A stretch of 64,000 nucleotides of DNA from contig OZ037768.1 in assembly GCA_964035545.1 (NCBI GenBank), forward strand, positions 992,001-1,056,000, read 5' to 3'. Shown piece after piece: positions 43,149 to 49,100 of the stretch. Made by a program: the position numbers and the translations under genes. Numbering within the stretch: the stretch's first letter is position 1; each line of letters begins with the position of its first letter. This stretch comes from Bugula neritina. Its lineage: Eukaryota > Animalia > Bryozoa. The notes under the pieces were generated by a model. That model worked only from the letters and a program-made list of their open reading frames with translations, searched no databases and was not told where the DNA came from.

Positions 43149-46100
43149 ATGTTTTCCAACGTGCCTGGTGGAAACTTGTTGAATAATATTGGAGGTAATA
43201 TTTCCAATATCGGTGATAAAGTTAATCCAACTGGTGCATTCAGTAACCTTGGTTCCAAGATTCCTGGCAACTTAAACCCATCTAATCTTGCGGGGACGTT
43301 CACAGGAAATACCTCTGCTGCCGCTACTGCTGAGGTACCCCTGGTCGTAGGTGTAGATGCTTGTTGTGCTCTCTATCATTTGGTCACACTTCTACACGTT
43401 TTTGTAACTTCATTATCTGTTTGAACACTCGTAGTGACGGGATATAGAATCTGGTTGTTTCATGCTTTGTGTTGTATCTACTACTTGCAGCATTCAAAAC
43501 TTCTCTCATTGCACACTTTTTTACTACATTGGCTACTGGTAGCTCTACTGGTAGCTAATGAATCGTCACAATATCCAAATCACTAACAGAATACCGGCAG
43601 CCTTATAGCTAAGCAATGCAAAACTCTACGAAGGTACATTTGAATAATCACTCCGAGGTTTTCATACTCTACGAGTAATATGGTTTACCAATTCCTCTTA
43701 TTTAAAATGATTATAAATAAAATACACACCTACACATTGCATAGCTGCCAGGAAAAAGATTAACATTAGGAACGTCATTTTAAGTTCTTTTTTATTTGCT
43801 TGTTATAATATTTCAGCATAGAAAATTGACTCGGTGAACTTAATTTTATCTTGTATTTATGTTTTAATATCTAGTGTTTCATTTTACGTCACAATCTTTA
43901 TTATTTGCTTACTAAACTTTATTTTTGGCTTACCCACTCTCAAGTAAATCAATAAAATTGAATAGAAGGACAATGTCGGCCATTCAGTTTTTCCTGTGCT
44001 TGCTATTCATTTAGATCAATTCCTAAACGTGCAGCTCTTTACCATGACTTCTAATAATAATTAACCGACTAACATCGCGTGTAAAGTGATGATTATTGGA
44101 TATAATTAGTTAGCTGACAGTAATGCTGAGAGCTGGGTCAACCATCCCGGCTCTGTATAGCCTGTGTTACTGAGTTCATGTCTCTCCCATCTTCTCAGGC
44201 ACCGGTGCCTCAGGCTCGCTCAAACTTCGGAGCGGCTGGCGTGGACATGAGTTCGGGAGCAGCTGATGGTAAATGGCAGAAGGATGCCGCCGACCAGAAC
44301 TTTGACTACATGTTCAAACTGCTCATCATCGGCAACTCGAGTGTCGGCAAGACCAGTTTCCTGTTTAGATACGCAGACGACTCGTTCACCTCGGCATTTG
44401 TTAGCACCGTGGGCATAGACTTCAAGGTCAAGACGGTCTATCGCAATGAAAAGAGAGTGAAACTCCAAATATGGGTGAGTTAATTAGTTTACTGAGGCAT
44501 TATTAGTGTAGAGAAACTAATGAAATGTGTTATATGGATTGATTGGTAATTTTTCTCTCAGCTTCTACTATCTTTGCTAACATTTCAGTTGATGCTATTG
44601 CAATGTGTCCTAGAGTAATTTATGTTATACTGGTGATCAATTTTTAATTGAAGTCAAAAAACTTTGCCATACTGAACTAAGAGCACTAAACCGACTCATA
44701 AAGTGGTTAAATAGTATCTGATCTGCTGTTTTATTCCATGTGGAGTGAAATGTTCTCTCTCTGGTGCTGAAGGCAGTATTCAGTGTGGTGTGATTGCTGA
44801 TCCTTCTGTACTGATGATAGTGTGTTTCTATGTGTCGTGCTGTAGGATACTGCGGGGCAGGAGAGGTACAGAACCATCACCACAGCCTATTATAGGGGTG
44901 CCATGGGCTTCATCCTCATGTATGATGTCACCAACGAAGAATCTTTCAAAGCAATTCAAGACTGGTAATAGTGATTATATTAGTCTTTGTATGATTTATC
45001 TCCCTTTCTTGTAAGACTTGAGATAAAACAATGAAGTGTGAATTTAATGCTCTGTTGAGTTAATACTGATGAGCATGTGTGAGTGACTGTGTAACGGGTA
45101 TTAGTAGTCTAGCTGGTAGATGGAGTGAGAGTGAGACTAACTCCAACTCACAGTCTGACTCTATATCACCGTGGAGTGGAGTTACTGTGTTTAGTAAACC
45201 ATGTAGCCATGTTTTGTGCAGGCTCACCAATATAAACACTCACGCCTGGTCCAACACCTCCGTGGTGTTATGTGGTAACAAGTGCGATCGGGAGGAGCTG
45301 CGAGTCGTACCGACGCAGGCAGGCGCTGACTTAGCCGACAAGTTAGGTAACTGAGCCTCGGGTTCTAGACTGTAGGCTCCCAGGTGTGGGTGGGTGACGG
45401 GCGTCTCTATCATTGTAACATCTGCTTTTGCGTAGGAATAAAGGGTGATGGTGTCTGGTATATGTTTGTGATGTCTCTTACTGCTAGTATCGGCAGCGTT
45501 CATTTGCTGCCGTTGGTCTGCTGCCGTGTGTCAGCAAAGCTCTAAAGGAAATTATTTGTGATCAATAATTAGTAGGACACGATATAGATTCATTTGCCAT
45601 TATATAACTAGGGACTAGGATTCTTCTAGTACTGAAAATATATGTGTTAAGCAGGCCTCAGCAGTAATATTAATAATATATATAATAATTATATAGTATT
45701 GGTTTGCAGACCAGCATATTCTACTCGTCATATGATTCGCAGCTACACGTTGCAGCATTCAGTTATACATAATGACTCCGTCAGTTTCTCTTCTCTACTC
45801 AACACCTACTAGCCTATCCAACTATCTTATGCTAAATTTGTAAATATCATTTTAACTCTGGGAAATCTTACAAAAGATCTGAACAGTTGCAATTTCTTCC
45901 ACCATTCAGCCATCTTTGTTGACGTCTGCTTGTATCATATCAGATGACTGACCACCACAGTAAAATGTGTGAGACACGCTGCATTGCATTGCGTACTACA
46001 CAACTATCTTCTGCATCATTGTAACCAGGTGCACGCAGATTAAGATGTATTCGTGGGACAACGCTCAGGTGGTGTTAGTTGGTAATAAGTGTGATTTGGA

Positions 46101-49100
46101 GGAAGAGAGAGTTGTCTCCACTGACAGAGGACAGAAACTAGCCGATCGTCTAGGTATCCACGTTGTTGTACGCTCTCTCACTAGCTTACTCACTCGCACT
46201 AGTTGTACGCTGTCTCACTAGCTTACTCACTCACACTAGTAGTAACTCATAATATATACTCACTCACACTAGTAGTAACTCATTCTATATACTCACTCGC
46301 ACTGACTACTCACTGACTCATTCTATATACTCACTCGCACTAGTAGTAACTCATACTATATACTCACTCGCACTAGTAGTAACTCATTCTATATACTCAC
46401 TCGCACTGACTACTCACTGACTCATTCTATGTACTCACTCGCACTAGTAGTAACTCATTCTATATACTCACTCGCACTGACTACTCACTGACTCATTCTA
46501 TATACTCACTCGCACTAGTAGTAACTCATACTATATACTCACTCGCACTAGTAGTAACTCATACTATATACTCACTCGCACTAGTAGTAACTCATTCTAT
46601 ATACTCACTCGCACTGACTACTCACTGACTCATTCTATATACTCACTCGCACTAGTAGTAACTCATACTATATACTCACTCGCACTAGTAGTAACTCATA
46701 CTATATACTCACTCGCACTAGTAGTAACTCATTCTATATACTCACACACACTGACTACTCACTGACTCTAGTTGACTGTATGTATACCTACTTACCTCTT
46801 CACTCAGTTACACTAGCACTTACATTCTAATTACCAGTTTACCAGTAAATCTGTTTACTCTGTCTGTACTCATTACTAAACTAGCTTTCTTACCCCCATG
46901 TGTAGTGACTTGCTTGCTACGTTATCTAATAATGACTGACTAGTCAGCAATATTCAGCTTGTAGACATTTACACTCTCATCTTACCACTCACTAATTACT
47001 GTATGTTTACTAGTTGACTCAAACCATACTCGTTAGTAACTCACACTACTCACTATTGGCTCACCATTGACTCACTAGTGACTAACTCTACTGACCACTG
47101 CTAACAGCTTCAGTAAACACTTTCATCTGTTGCAGCTCTTGTGCTTTTGGTGTTGTGATTCGATATTCTGTATTGTTTCCTTAAGTTGTCACAGCAGAGT
47201 TATCTTTTCTCAACTAGTCGCTGTGATTATGCTCTAGATATCATTTGTTCTCACTGATCTCTTCTGCTATGTGAACTTCTCCAACCATGAGTTCTACAGC
47301 TATCTGCACTAAATGAACACATTTCTCTGTTTGTCTGTAGAGTTATTGTATTTAGCTGTGCATTAGCTACCTTAAACTCAACATCATATTAGGAATCTGT
47401 AACCTCAAATGTGGTGCTGAAAGTGGCATTACTTTAGCAAGTTATTACCTGTGCCATTTTTACCTAAAATGGTTGACCTCACCAAGAAGAGTCATGTATA
47501 GTTTACATTACTCTACTGTCTACAGTCTACACCTTTACTTTATTCTTAGAAGAGCCGGCCAGTATTAAGAGTATTGTTATATTATTGTTATATTATGATG
47601 GAAATAGTGGTAGCTGACTAAGCTGATAATACATAACCTTTTTAGTACAAGTATATTCAACCTTTCATAATAGTACGAGTATTTAAGTAATGGTTAACTA
47701 TTATTCCTATAATAGTATTAATAGAAACGCTAATAGCTACTACTTTACTACGAGTAGTAGTGCTACTACTACTACCACTAGTACTACTACTACTACTACT
47801 ACTACCACTAGTACTACTACTACCACTACTACTACTACCATTACTACTACTAGTACTACTACTACCATTACTACTAGTAATACTATTACTACTACTAATA
47901 CTGCTAATATTACTACTACTACTACTACTACTACTACTACTACTACTACTACTACTACTACTACTACTACTACTACTACTACTACTACTACCACTACTAC
48001 TACTACTACTACTACTACTACTACTACCACTACTACTACCACTACCACTACTACTACCACTATTACCACTACTACAGAGTTTAGTGCTAATCATTGATTT
48101 AGTGTAGATACAGCAGAGTAAGTTGATGGAAGGGGCAGTAATCAATAGCTAGTAGTTGCCATTCAGTTGATGTATTAAGAACAGGACAAGGCTTGCTGTA
48201 CACAGAAAGTATGACAGAATATTGACTAGTGTATTGTGTTGTGTAGCTTGTAACACCATATAACAGCTAATCCTTATATTACAGTCCAATATAGATAATC
48301 AATGTTCCACTCCAAACATCTTATATTCATAACTTGCAATGCTTGCATAATGTGAACTAAATAGCCAACAGCTCATAGCTTCCTGTGTATAATGAGAAGG
48401 AGGGACTCAAACTGTCTGCTGCCTTTCTCCATTTCCTGTCTGCTGCTGCTTTGTTTTTCTCAAGTTGGCAGAGGAAAAGGGAGAATTTCAAAAATACGTG
48501 TTTATTGAAATATTTAGGATAATACCCACAACACTAAATAACCACCTTGAGCTATATAACAATAATATATGGTATAATATATTATGATAATATAATAATA
48601 CAATATTTTGAGCACTCAGAATCTGGCCCCTTTCAGCTAACATCCTCCATAACTCTGCACCGGATAAAGTACAAGAAATGCACTTGCTACAGCTGTCTAC
48701 CTGTGCTTATGTGTTTAATGTTCTCTTTACAACATTGTCTTTAGTTAGCCTGTCAATATCCTAGGAGTTACCTCCTCACGTATCTAATAATTTATATGTT
48801 TGATACTATTTGTTGAGGTGAAATAAGTGAACAGGTGAAAACTTTCAATGATTTACTAATTGTTAATTTTAGTGTTTATTATACTAAATTTGGTCTTGCT
48901 TTCTAAATTCTAAAACTTTTACACATTTTACTTTATGTTTATTAATTTCCTAATTTTAATAATATAATTTATTTTATTGTTTCAGTTTATTAGCTTTTCA
49001 CAATTCTATATCTGTTTGCCATAACCAGAAATGGATACTGTATAATATAATAAACACTGTGTACACTGTATAATATACACACTCCTCCTTTAGGGCTGGA

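Follow-up and report, generated by a model that had tools for sequence, protein, structure and literature searches.

The bryozoan Bugula neritina very probably carries the Rab3 orthologue of a spiralian animal in a form whose fourth coding exon is an ancient tandem pair, spliced in an either/or manner. The gene lies at 43.1–49.8 kb, on the plus strand, of a 64,000-nucleotide stretch of genomic DNA (NCBI GenBank assembly GCA_964035545.1, contig OZ037768.1, positions 992,001 to 1,056,000), hereafter the window, from whose first letter positions are counted. Rab3 is the main vesicle-release Rab in neurons and secretory cells and, to our knowledge, the invertebrate protein is generally treated as a single one. 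Here, one gene gives rise to two Rab3 mRNAs, in which exon 3 is joined to exon 5 either through a variant ("a-type") exon, 4a, or through the canonical Rab3 exon, 4b (E3-4a-E5 and E3-4b-E5). An earlier note, made from the letters of the window alone, had proposed such a pair together with several further claims, and the results bearing on these are given below.

RNA evidence for either/or splicing

Assembled RNA contigs from four runs, belonging to four studies, were aligned to positions 44150–49750 of the window (5,601 nucleotides, nt). These contigs carry no tissue or stage labels, and rare forms drop out of them. The runs behave as RNA, with an intron depth of approximately zero and with GT..AG joints present. 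All four runs contain the joints from exon 2 to exon 3 (44474>44846), from exon 3 to 4a (44964>45222) and to 4b (44964>46029), from 4b to exon 5 (46153>49094) and from exon 5 to the last coding exon (49231>49467), and the joint from 4a to exon 5 (45346>49094) is present in three of the four. A joint between 4a and 4b (45346>46029) was not found among the contigs of the four runs, although contigs cannot exclude rare double inclusion. The spliced contigs thus bear out the proposal that a single gene makes both mRNAs. Contig word depth was 191–322 over 4a and 101–149 over 4b; these are rough figures only, yet since the depth of 4a is not below that of 4b, 4a is not a trace form.

The anatomy of the two exons fits this pattern, and the earlier note had described it correctly to the base, including the peptides that it quoted. 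Both exons are 125 nt long, have an upstream AG and a downstream GT at their borders, and continue the frame of exon 3 without a stop. Exon 3 leaves two bases of a Trp codon at 44964, each exon runs from phase 2 to phase 1, and the last base of either starts a Gly codon that is completed by exon 5 (from 49094). While the exons were searched singly against databases, codons and first stops were counted locally on the joined exons. By this count each single-exon form has 220 codons, inclusion of both exons brings a stop at 46076, a break of frame that had also been claimed, and skipping of both brings one at 49107; an mRNA with both exons or neither stops early because each exon is 125 nt long. 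A stop codon with exon junctions downstream is the usual trigger of nonsense-mediated decay, and double-inclusion and double-skip mRNAs would be removed by this route, such that protein would be made from the single-exon forms only.

With 682 nt of intron between 4a and 4b, steric hindrance is not the mechanism of the either/or choice. The inverted repeats in 44965–49093 are only AT-rich or (CTA)n low-complexity sequences (70–83%), and there is therefore no credible docking/selector pair for RNA pairing in that interval. Rbfox-type (U)GCAUG motifs are absent within 140 nt of either exon in the window and in the two contigs of its nearest relatives (L002 and L003, introduced below), and they are inconsistently placed in three further contigs (L005–L007).

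Rab3 identity and homology of the two exons

The motifs of Ras/Rab GTPases are all present, i.e., G1 (GNSSVGKT) in exon 2, G3 (DTAGQE) in exon 3, G4 (NKCD) in both 4a and 4b, and G5 (ETSAK) in exon 5. Exons 2, 3 and 5 have 80–95% identity to mollusc Rab-3. Compared with solved structures, exon 4b scores 58–63 bits against Rab3A, Rab3B, Rab3C, Rab3D and fly Rab3 (63 bits to Rab3A in 1zbd/3rab), with the next family at approximately 33 bits. The best matches of exon 4a are Rab3B, Rab3D, Rab3A and Rab3C (34–41 bits), followed by Rab27A at 24.1 bits. The predicted protein ends in a double-cysteine prenylation motif (..GGCC); this is CC here, versus CxC in the mollusc models and in a second paralogue of the same genome.

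Exons 4a and 4b are identical at 23 of 41 residues (56%) and at 59% of bases. The Pfam Ras profile (PF00071) matches every exon of the gene, and it places 4a and 4b at the same profile positions, 95–133, with 27.5 and 36 bits, respectively. Apart from itself and 4b, 4a matches a single exon in the whole 216-Mb genome, a Rab3-like one on a different contig, and the similarity of 4a and 4b is therefore due to homology and not to chance. A third, decayed copy of exon 4 was not found within 43000–51000.

Age and distribution of the exon pair

To collect homologues, the 4a peptide was run with phmmer against the full library, and the matching contigs were then looked up. The order exon 3, variant exon, canonical exon is kept in five of these (L002, L003, L005, L006 and L007), in which all exon borders read AG|G..G|GT and the exon length is 125 nt throughout, except for the variant of L002, which is 128 nt. 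The variant begins with LTNI only in the window, L002 and L003 (LTNIN in the window, CTQIK in the mollusc and Lingula models), on which grounds L002 and L003 are its nearest relatives. Copy number is higher in other animals, with three exon-4 copies in L008/L009 and four in L010/L011 (ENA ERZ25069853, ERZ25072999), each of these clusters being seen on two haplotype contigs. The order is reversed, canonical then variant, in L004 and in the protein models of Adineta (bdelloid rotifers).

The variant also occurs in RefSeq models. Rab-3 isoforms X2/X3 that bear it are annotated in Pomacea, Pecten, Ylistrum, Haliotis (two species), Saccostrea and Gigantopelta, and further variant-bearing models are found in Littorina, Patella and, as isoform X2, the brachiopod Lingula. 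The earlier note had allowed that the event might already be widely annotated; this is so in part, through the X2/X3 models of several molluscs and Lingula.

In a tree of the 41-residue exons the canonical exons of invertebrates group together. Exon 4b of the window stands with the canonical exons of L002 and L003 (98/89), while 4a stands with their variants (92/89). A tree constrained to unite the a and b exons of the window's lineage is worse by 22.8 log-likelihood units (approximately unbiased (AU) test, p 0.0196), and a private duplication within this lineage was rejected on that result. A single clade of all TH-type variants was not rejected (p 0.29). A recent private duplication is thus excluded; the columns are few, so a single origin of the variants is not proven.

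Some database models contain both exons. In the models P0160 (Batillaria), P0161 (Nucella) and P0181/P0183 (Adineta) the two are linked by a translated intron, and these models are probably annotation errors caused by the exon pair. Model A0A1I8G3K1 of Macrostomum lignano has two homologous exon copies in a row.

Residues that differ between the isoforms

Residues are numbered here as in rat Rab3A, where exon 4 begins at 117, so that WDN124–126 of fly Rab3 corresponds to W125-D126-N127. The P-loop, switches I and II, the N-terminal RabCDR1, helix alpha5 (RabCDR3) and the prenylated tail are the same in both isoforms. Of the 41 residues compared in exon 4, 18 differ, located at the end of alpha3, in the alpha3/beta5 loop, at the flank of beta5 and in alpha4. 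The loop is the region named RabCDR2 or RabSF3, and the rabphilin SGAWFF motif, to which motifs in Rab27 effectors are related, binds the RabCDRs (PMC9308819). In fly Rab3, WDN124–126 makes up most of the alpha3-beta5 loop, the second complementarity-determining region, and was picked as rabphilin-contacting on the basis of the Rab3A-rabphilin crystal structure (PMC4552854). The earlier note's placement of the variable segment on this loop therefore stands.

Comparison of 17 a-type with 12 canonical exons separated what is fixed from what varies. Residues I120 (V in one exon), V130, L132, G134, N135-K-C-D138, R143, L153 and L157 are invariant in both types. In the a-type signature, Y123 is replaced by H in 17/17 exons, S124 by A in 16/17 and D126 by S in 13/17; in addition, position 129 of a-type exons is never the canonical Q and position 142 is never acidic (canonical E142). 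Positions 146–156 of alpha4 also differ between the types, in taxon-specific ways, while the changes fixed across phyla sit in the alpha3/beta5 loop.

Selection on exon 4a

Among the window, L002 and L003, the nonsynonymous divergence (dN) is 0.28–0.39 for 4a versus 0.05–0.08 for 4b. The synonymous divergence (dS) is saturated in nearly all pairs of the exon comparison, which rules out the use of dN/dS and leaves dN itself and the comparison with 4b as the measures to go by. On these figures 4a evolves approximately five times faster than the canonical exon, yet at a rate far below that of silent sites. Between the window and the RNA contigs, 4a differs at three positions (45270, 45285 and 45312) and 4b at one (46119); all are third-position and synonymous. 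To judge from its conservation across phyla, its intact splice sites, dN against a saturated dS and polymorphisms that are synonymous only, 4a is under purifying selection, as the earlier note had suggested.

A second Rab3-like gene and the comparison with Rab27

The earlier note further proposed that the exon pair replaces the paralogue expansion seen in vertebrates, a claim that the genome does not support. On the minus strand of contig C5 (approximately 10151455–10151574; L001 7077–8898) lies another Rab3-like gene, in which exon 4 is single. Its exon 3 is 90% identical, its exon 4 is 71% identical to 4b, its exon 5 is 68% identical and its tail is CAC. Its introns are approximately 200 nt, too short to leave room for a twin of exon 4. 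Given this gene, the exon pair is not a stand-in for gene duplication.

A resemblance of 4a to Rab27 had also been suggested, and this was not borne out. Against Rab27A, 4a reaches 24.1 bits and 4b reaches 25.5, and the best solved relatives of 4a are all Rab3. The genome contains a separate Rab27-like exon (C9:9610254–9610439), and within the genome 4a matches Rab3-type exons only. The reading of 4a as a Rab27-like surface was rejected on these scores.

Gene layout and alternative 5' ends

The features of the gene are listed in Table 1.

Table 1. Features of the Rab3 gene in the window.
Feature	Position	Strand	Remarks
Alternative first exon	43117..43334	+	5' end approximate; ATG at 43149; donor GT at 43335
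Exon 2	44199..44474	+	Start codon 44247; RabCDR1 region (FDYMF); P-loop GNSSVGKT; switch I; Pfam Ras 53 bits
Exon 3	44846..44964	+	DTAGQE (G3); switch II; phase 2 end
Exon 4a, variant (a-type)	45222..45346	+	alpha3 end; alpha3/beta5 loop H123-A124-W-S126; beta5; NKCD; alpha4
Intron 4a–4b	45347..46028	+	682 nt; RNA-contig depth approximately zero
Exon 4b, canonical Rab3	46029..46153	+	Y123-S124-W-D126-N127; NKCD
Exon 5	49094..49231	+	ETSAK (G5); alpha5 (RabCDR3 region)
Last coding exon	49467..49519	+	Tail ..GGCC; stop 49517–49519; 3' untranslated region extends past 49750 (contigs)

The alternative first exon was seen joined to the exon-2 acceptor over 218 nt in one run (X3, mapping to ..43332/43334) and over 27 nt in another (X10). 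From its ATG runs a 62-codon frame rich in N, G and S, which continues in frame through 16 codons (44199–44246) to the Met at 44247; the Rab3 encoded by some transcripts could thus be longer by 78 residues at its N-terminus, just before RabCDR1. A second 5' leader, of up to 197 nt and ending ..ACTTCACCTTG, is joined to the exon-2 acceptor (44198) in three runs. With up to two mismatches allowed, it could be placed neither in the window nor elsewhere in the genome, and may reflect an assembly gap, a diverged allele or some other origin.

The intron between 4b and exon 5 contains a tandem array of a 33-nt unit (approximately 15 copies, 86% alike, 46224–46752), which begins 70 nt past the 4b donor, and a (CTA)n run of approximately 113 units (47737–48075). 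These two repeats account for the strong negative GC skew of 46–48 kb.

Rab-like matches were also found on small contigs of the assembly (C33, C199, C204, C101, C87, C42, C230, C41, C46, C66, C103 and C22), and these contain in-frame TAA and TAG and no TGA. As this is the pattern of a ciliate-type code, the assembly probably includes contigs from a ciliate that lives on the animal or together with it.

Functional interpretation

The exon choice gives two Rab3 proteins of 220 residues that share the nucleotide-binding and switch machinery and differ in one surface. In the interpretation that we prefer, the a-type loop would retune the pocket that takes the SGAWFF-type motif of rabphilin, RIM or Slp-like effectors, and one gene would then provide two Rab3 proteins with the same GTP cycle and different partner preference. 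Judged from the position of the changed residues, we give a shift in preference for SGAWFF-type effectors roughly an even chance of being real. Several points weigh against it. In fly, the mutant WDN124–126AAA was reported not to disrupt Rab3 function at the neuromuscular junction (PMC4552854), which means that not every role of Rab3 depends on RabCDR2. In the variant exons of the nearest relatives W125 has become F (L002) or V (L003), which could mean relaxed constraint. In addition, the RNA evidence consists of assembled contigs and not raw reads, and so cannot give true ratios, a tissue pattern or rare double inclusion, and neither the inverted repeats nor the Rbfox-type motifs provide an RNA element that enforces the either/or choice.

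Some of these points would equally suit isoforms that are biochemically equivalent, with the pair being kept for exon-specific control of splicing and the choice reflecting cell type (regulatory subfunctionalisation). The structural core and the NKCD box are whole in both exons, the fly alanine mutants of CDR2 are in keeping with equivalence, and the a-type exon has drifted quickly in the window's lineage. However, H123, A124 and S126 are kept in molluscs, a brachiopod and this animal while their neighbours vary, a pattern not easily accounted for unless selection acts on the protein surface, and all differences fixed across phyla lie on one surface loop; we therefore regard equivalence as unlikely, although it is to be taken seriously. 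The same distribution bears on the idea that the swap alters the nucleotide cycle or recognition by regulators (GTPase-activating protein, guanine nucleotide exchange factor, or GDP dissociation inhibitor/Rab escort protein) and not effector choice. The exon does carry beta5, the G4 box NKCD and alpha4, and there are differences that flank G4 (V133C in the window; 139 and 142) or are spread over alpha4 (146–156), outside the rabphilin pocket. Yet NKCD, G134, V130 and L132 are invariant in both types, and only positions of the alpha3/beta5 loop are fixed across phyla, the alpha4 differences being taxon-dependent, which makes an effect on the cycle or its regulators rather improbable, more so than equivalence. 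The notion that 4a is a pseudo-exon in decay, or a "poison" exon that yields no protein, can draw on its far greater divergence relative to 4b, both in identity and in Pfam score, but is effectively refuted. Its frame is open and its splice sites are intact in the window as well as in five further assemblies, and in three to four of the four runs it is joined in frame to the exons on either side, at a contig depth not under that of 4b. It differs by synonymous polymorphisms only, completes the full 220-codon frame and belongs to a coding isoform in approximately ten named species. The earlier note had itself raised an unspliced exon, decayed or absent in relatives, as an outcome that would count against its proposal; what was found instead are spliced contigs and an intact exon in other assemblies.

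Relation to known systems and significance

The splicing principle is known. In the vertebrate gene RAB6A, an internal exon has been duplicated in tandem and one copy or the other is spliced in; the resulting isoforms, Rab6A and Rab6A', share the GTPase core and differ in few surface residues. The gene described here is likewise a Rab GTPase gene with an either/or duplicated exon, but it belongs to another subfamily and to a spiralian and not a vertebrate, 18 of 41 residues differ, and some taxa have three to four copies. In RAB37, a substitution derived from tandem exon duplication involves an ancient homologous exon pair with orthologues in Drosophila, in which the differing residues form a surface patch proposed to change partners and the identical residues lie inside (Martinez-Gomez et al. 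2021, PMC8373072). RAB37 is of the same exocytic Rab3/26/27/37 branch but is a different gene, and Rab3 is without mention in that paper.

Isoforms of Rab3 itself are already present in automatic annotation. In the RefSeq Rab-3 isoforms X2/X3, e.g., XP_025111509.1 of Pomacea canaliculata, an orthologous a-type exon (THAW-S/P-N) replaces the TYSWDNAQ exon. These are automatic predictions without a published description, and their variant exons, which start with CTQIK, are less diverged than the LTNIN exon of the window. Literature searches on mutually exclusive or duplicated exons of Rab3, and on Rab3 splice variants in molluscs or bryozoans, yielded no account of the event, a weak negative in that subscription journals were little covered. 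What the case contributes is a description and a testable hypothesis, not a surprise.

The vertebrate Rab3A to Rab3D are likewise a set of Rab3 proteins that share their core and differ slightly in the RabSF regions. These, however, arose by gene duplication and not by exon choice, and all vertebrate exons examined are of the canonical type, whereas the present genome has an alternative-exon gene in addition to the second Rab3-like gene.

In its widest form, the hypothesis is that an exon-4 cassette of two to four copies, spread across Spiralia and hundreds of millions of years old, reprograms RabCDR2 and lets one gene serve several effector specificities, a system undescribed in the literature. 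We put this forward tentatively, and consider it somewhat more likely to fail than to hold. If true, the cassette would be an invertebrate route to what vertebrates reached with the copies Rab3A to Rab3D, e.g., the separation of synaptic from other regulated secretion. Since the choice of exon affects nothing but the alpha3/beta5 specificity loop and alpha4, the two isoforms are a natural pair for asking what RabCDR2 does, a question left open by the fly mutants. For molluscs, brachiopods, bryozoans and rotifers it also follows that the two forms should be distinguished in gene models and in knock-downs.

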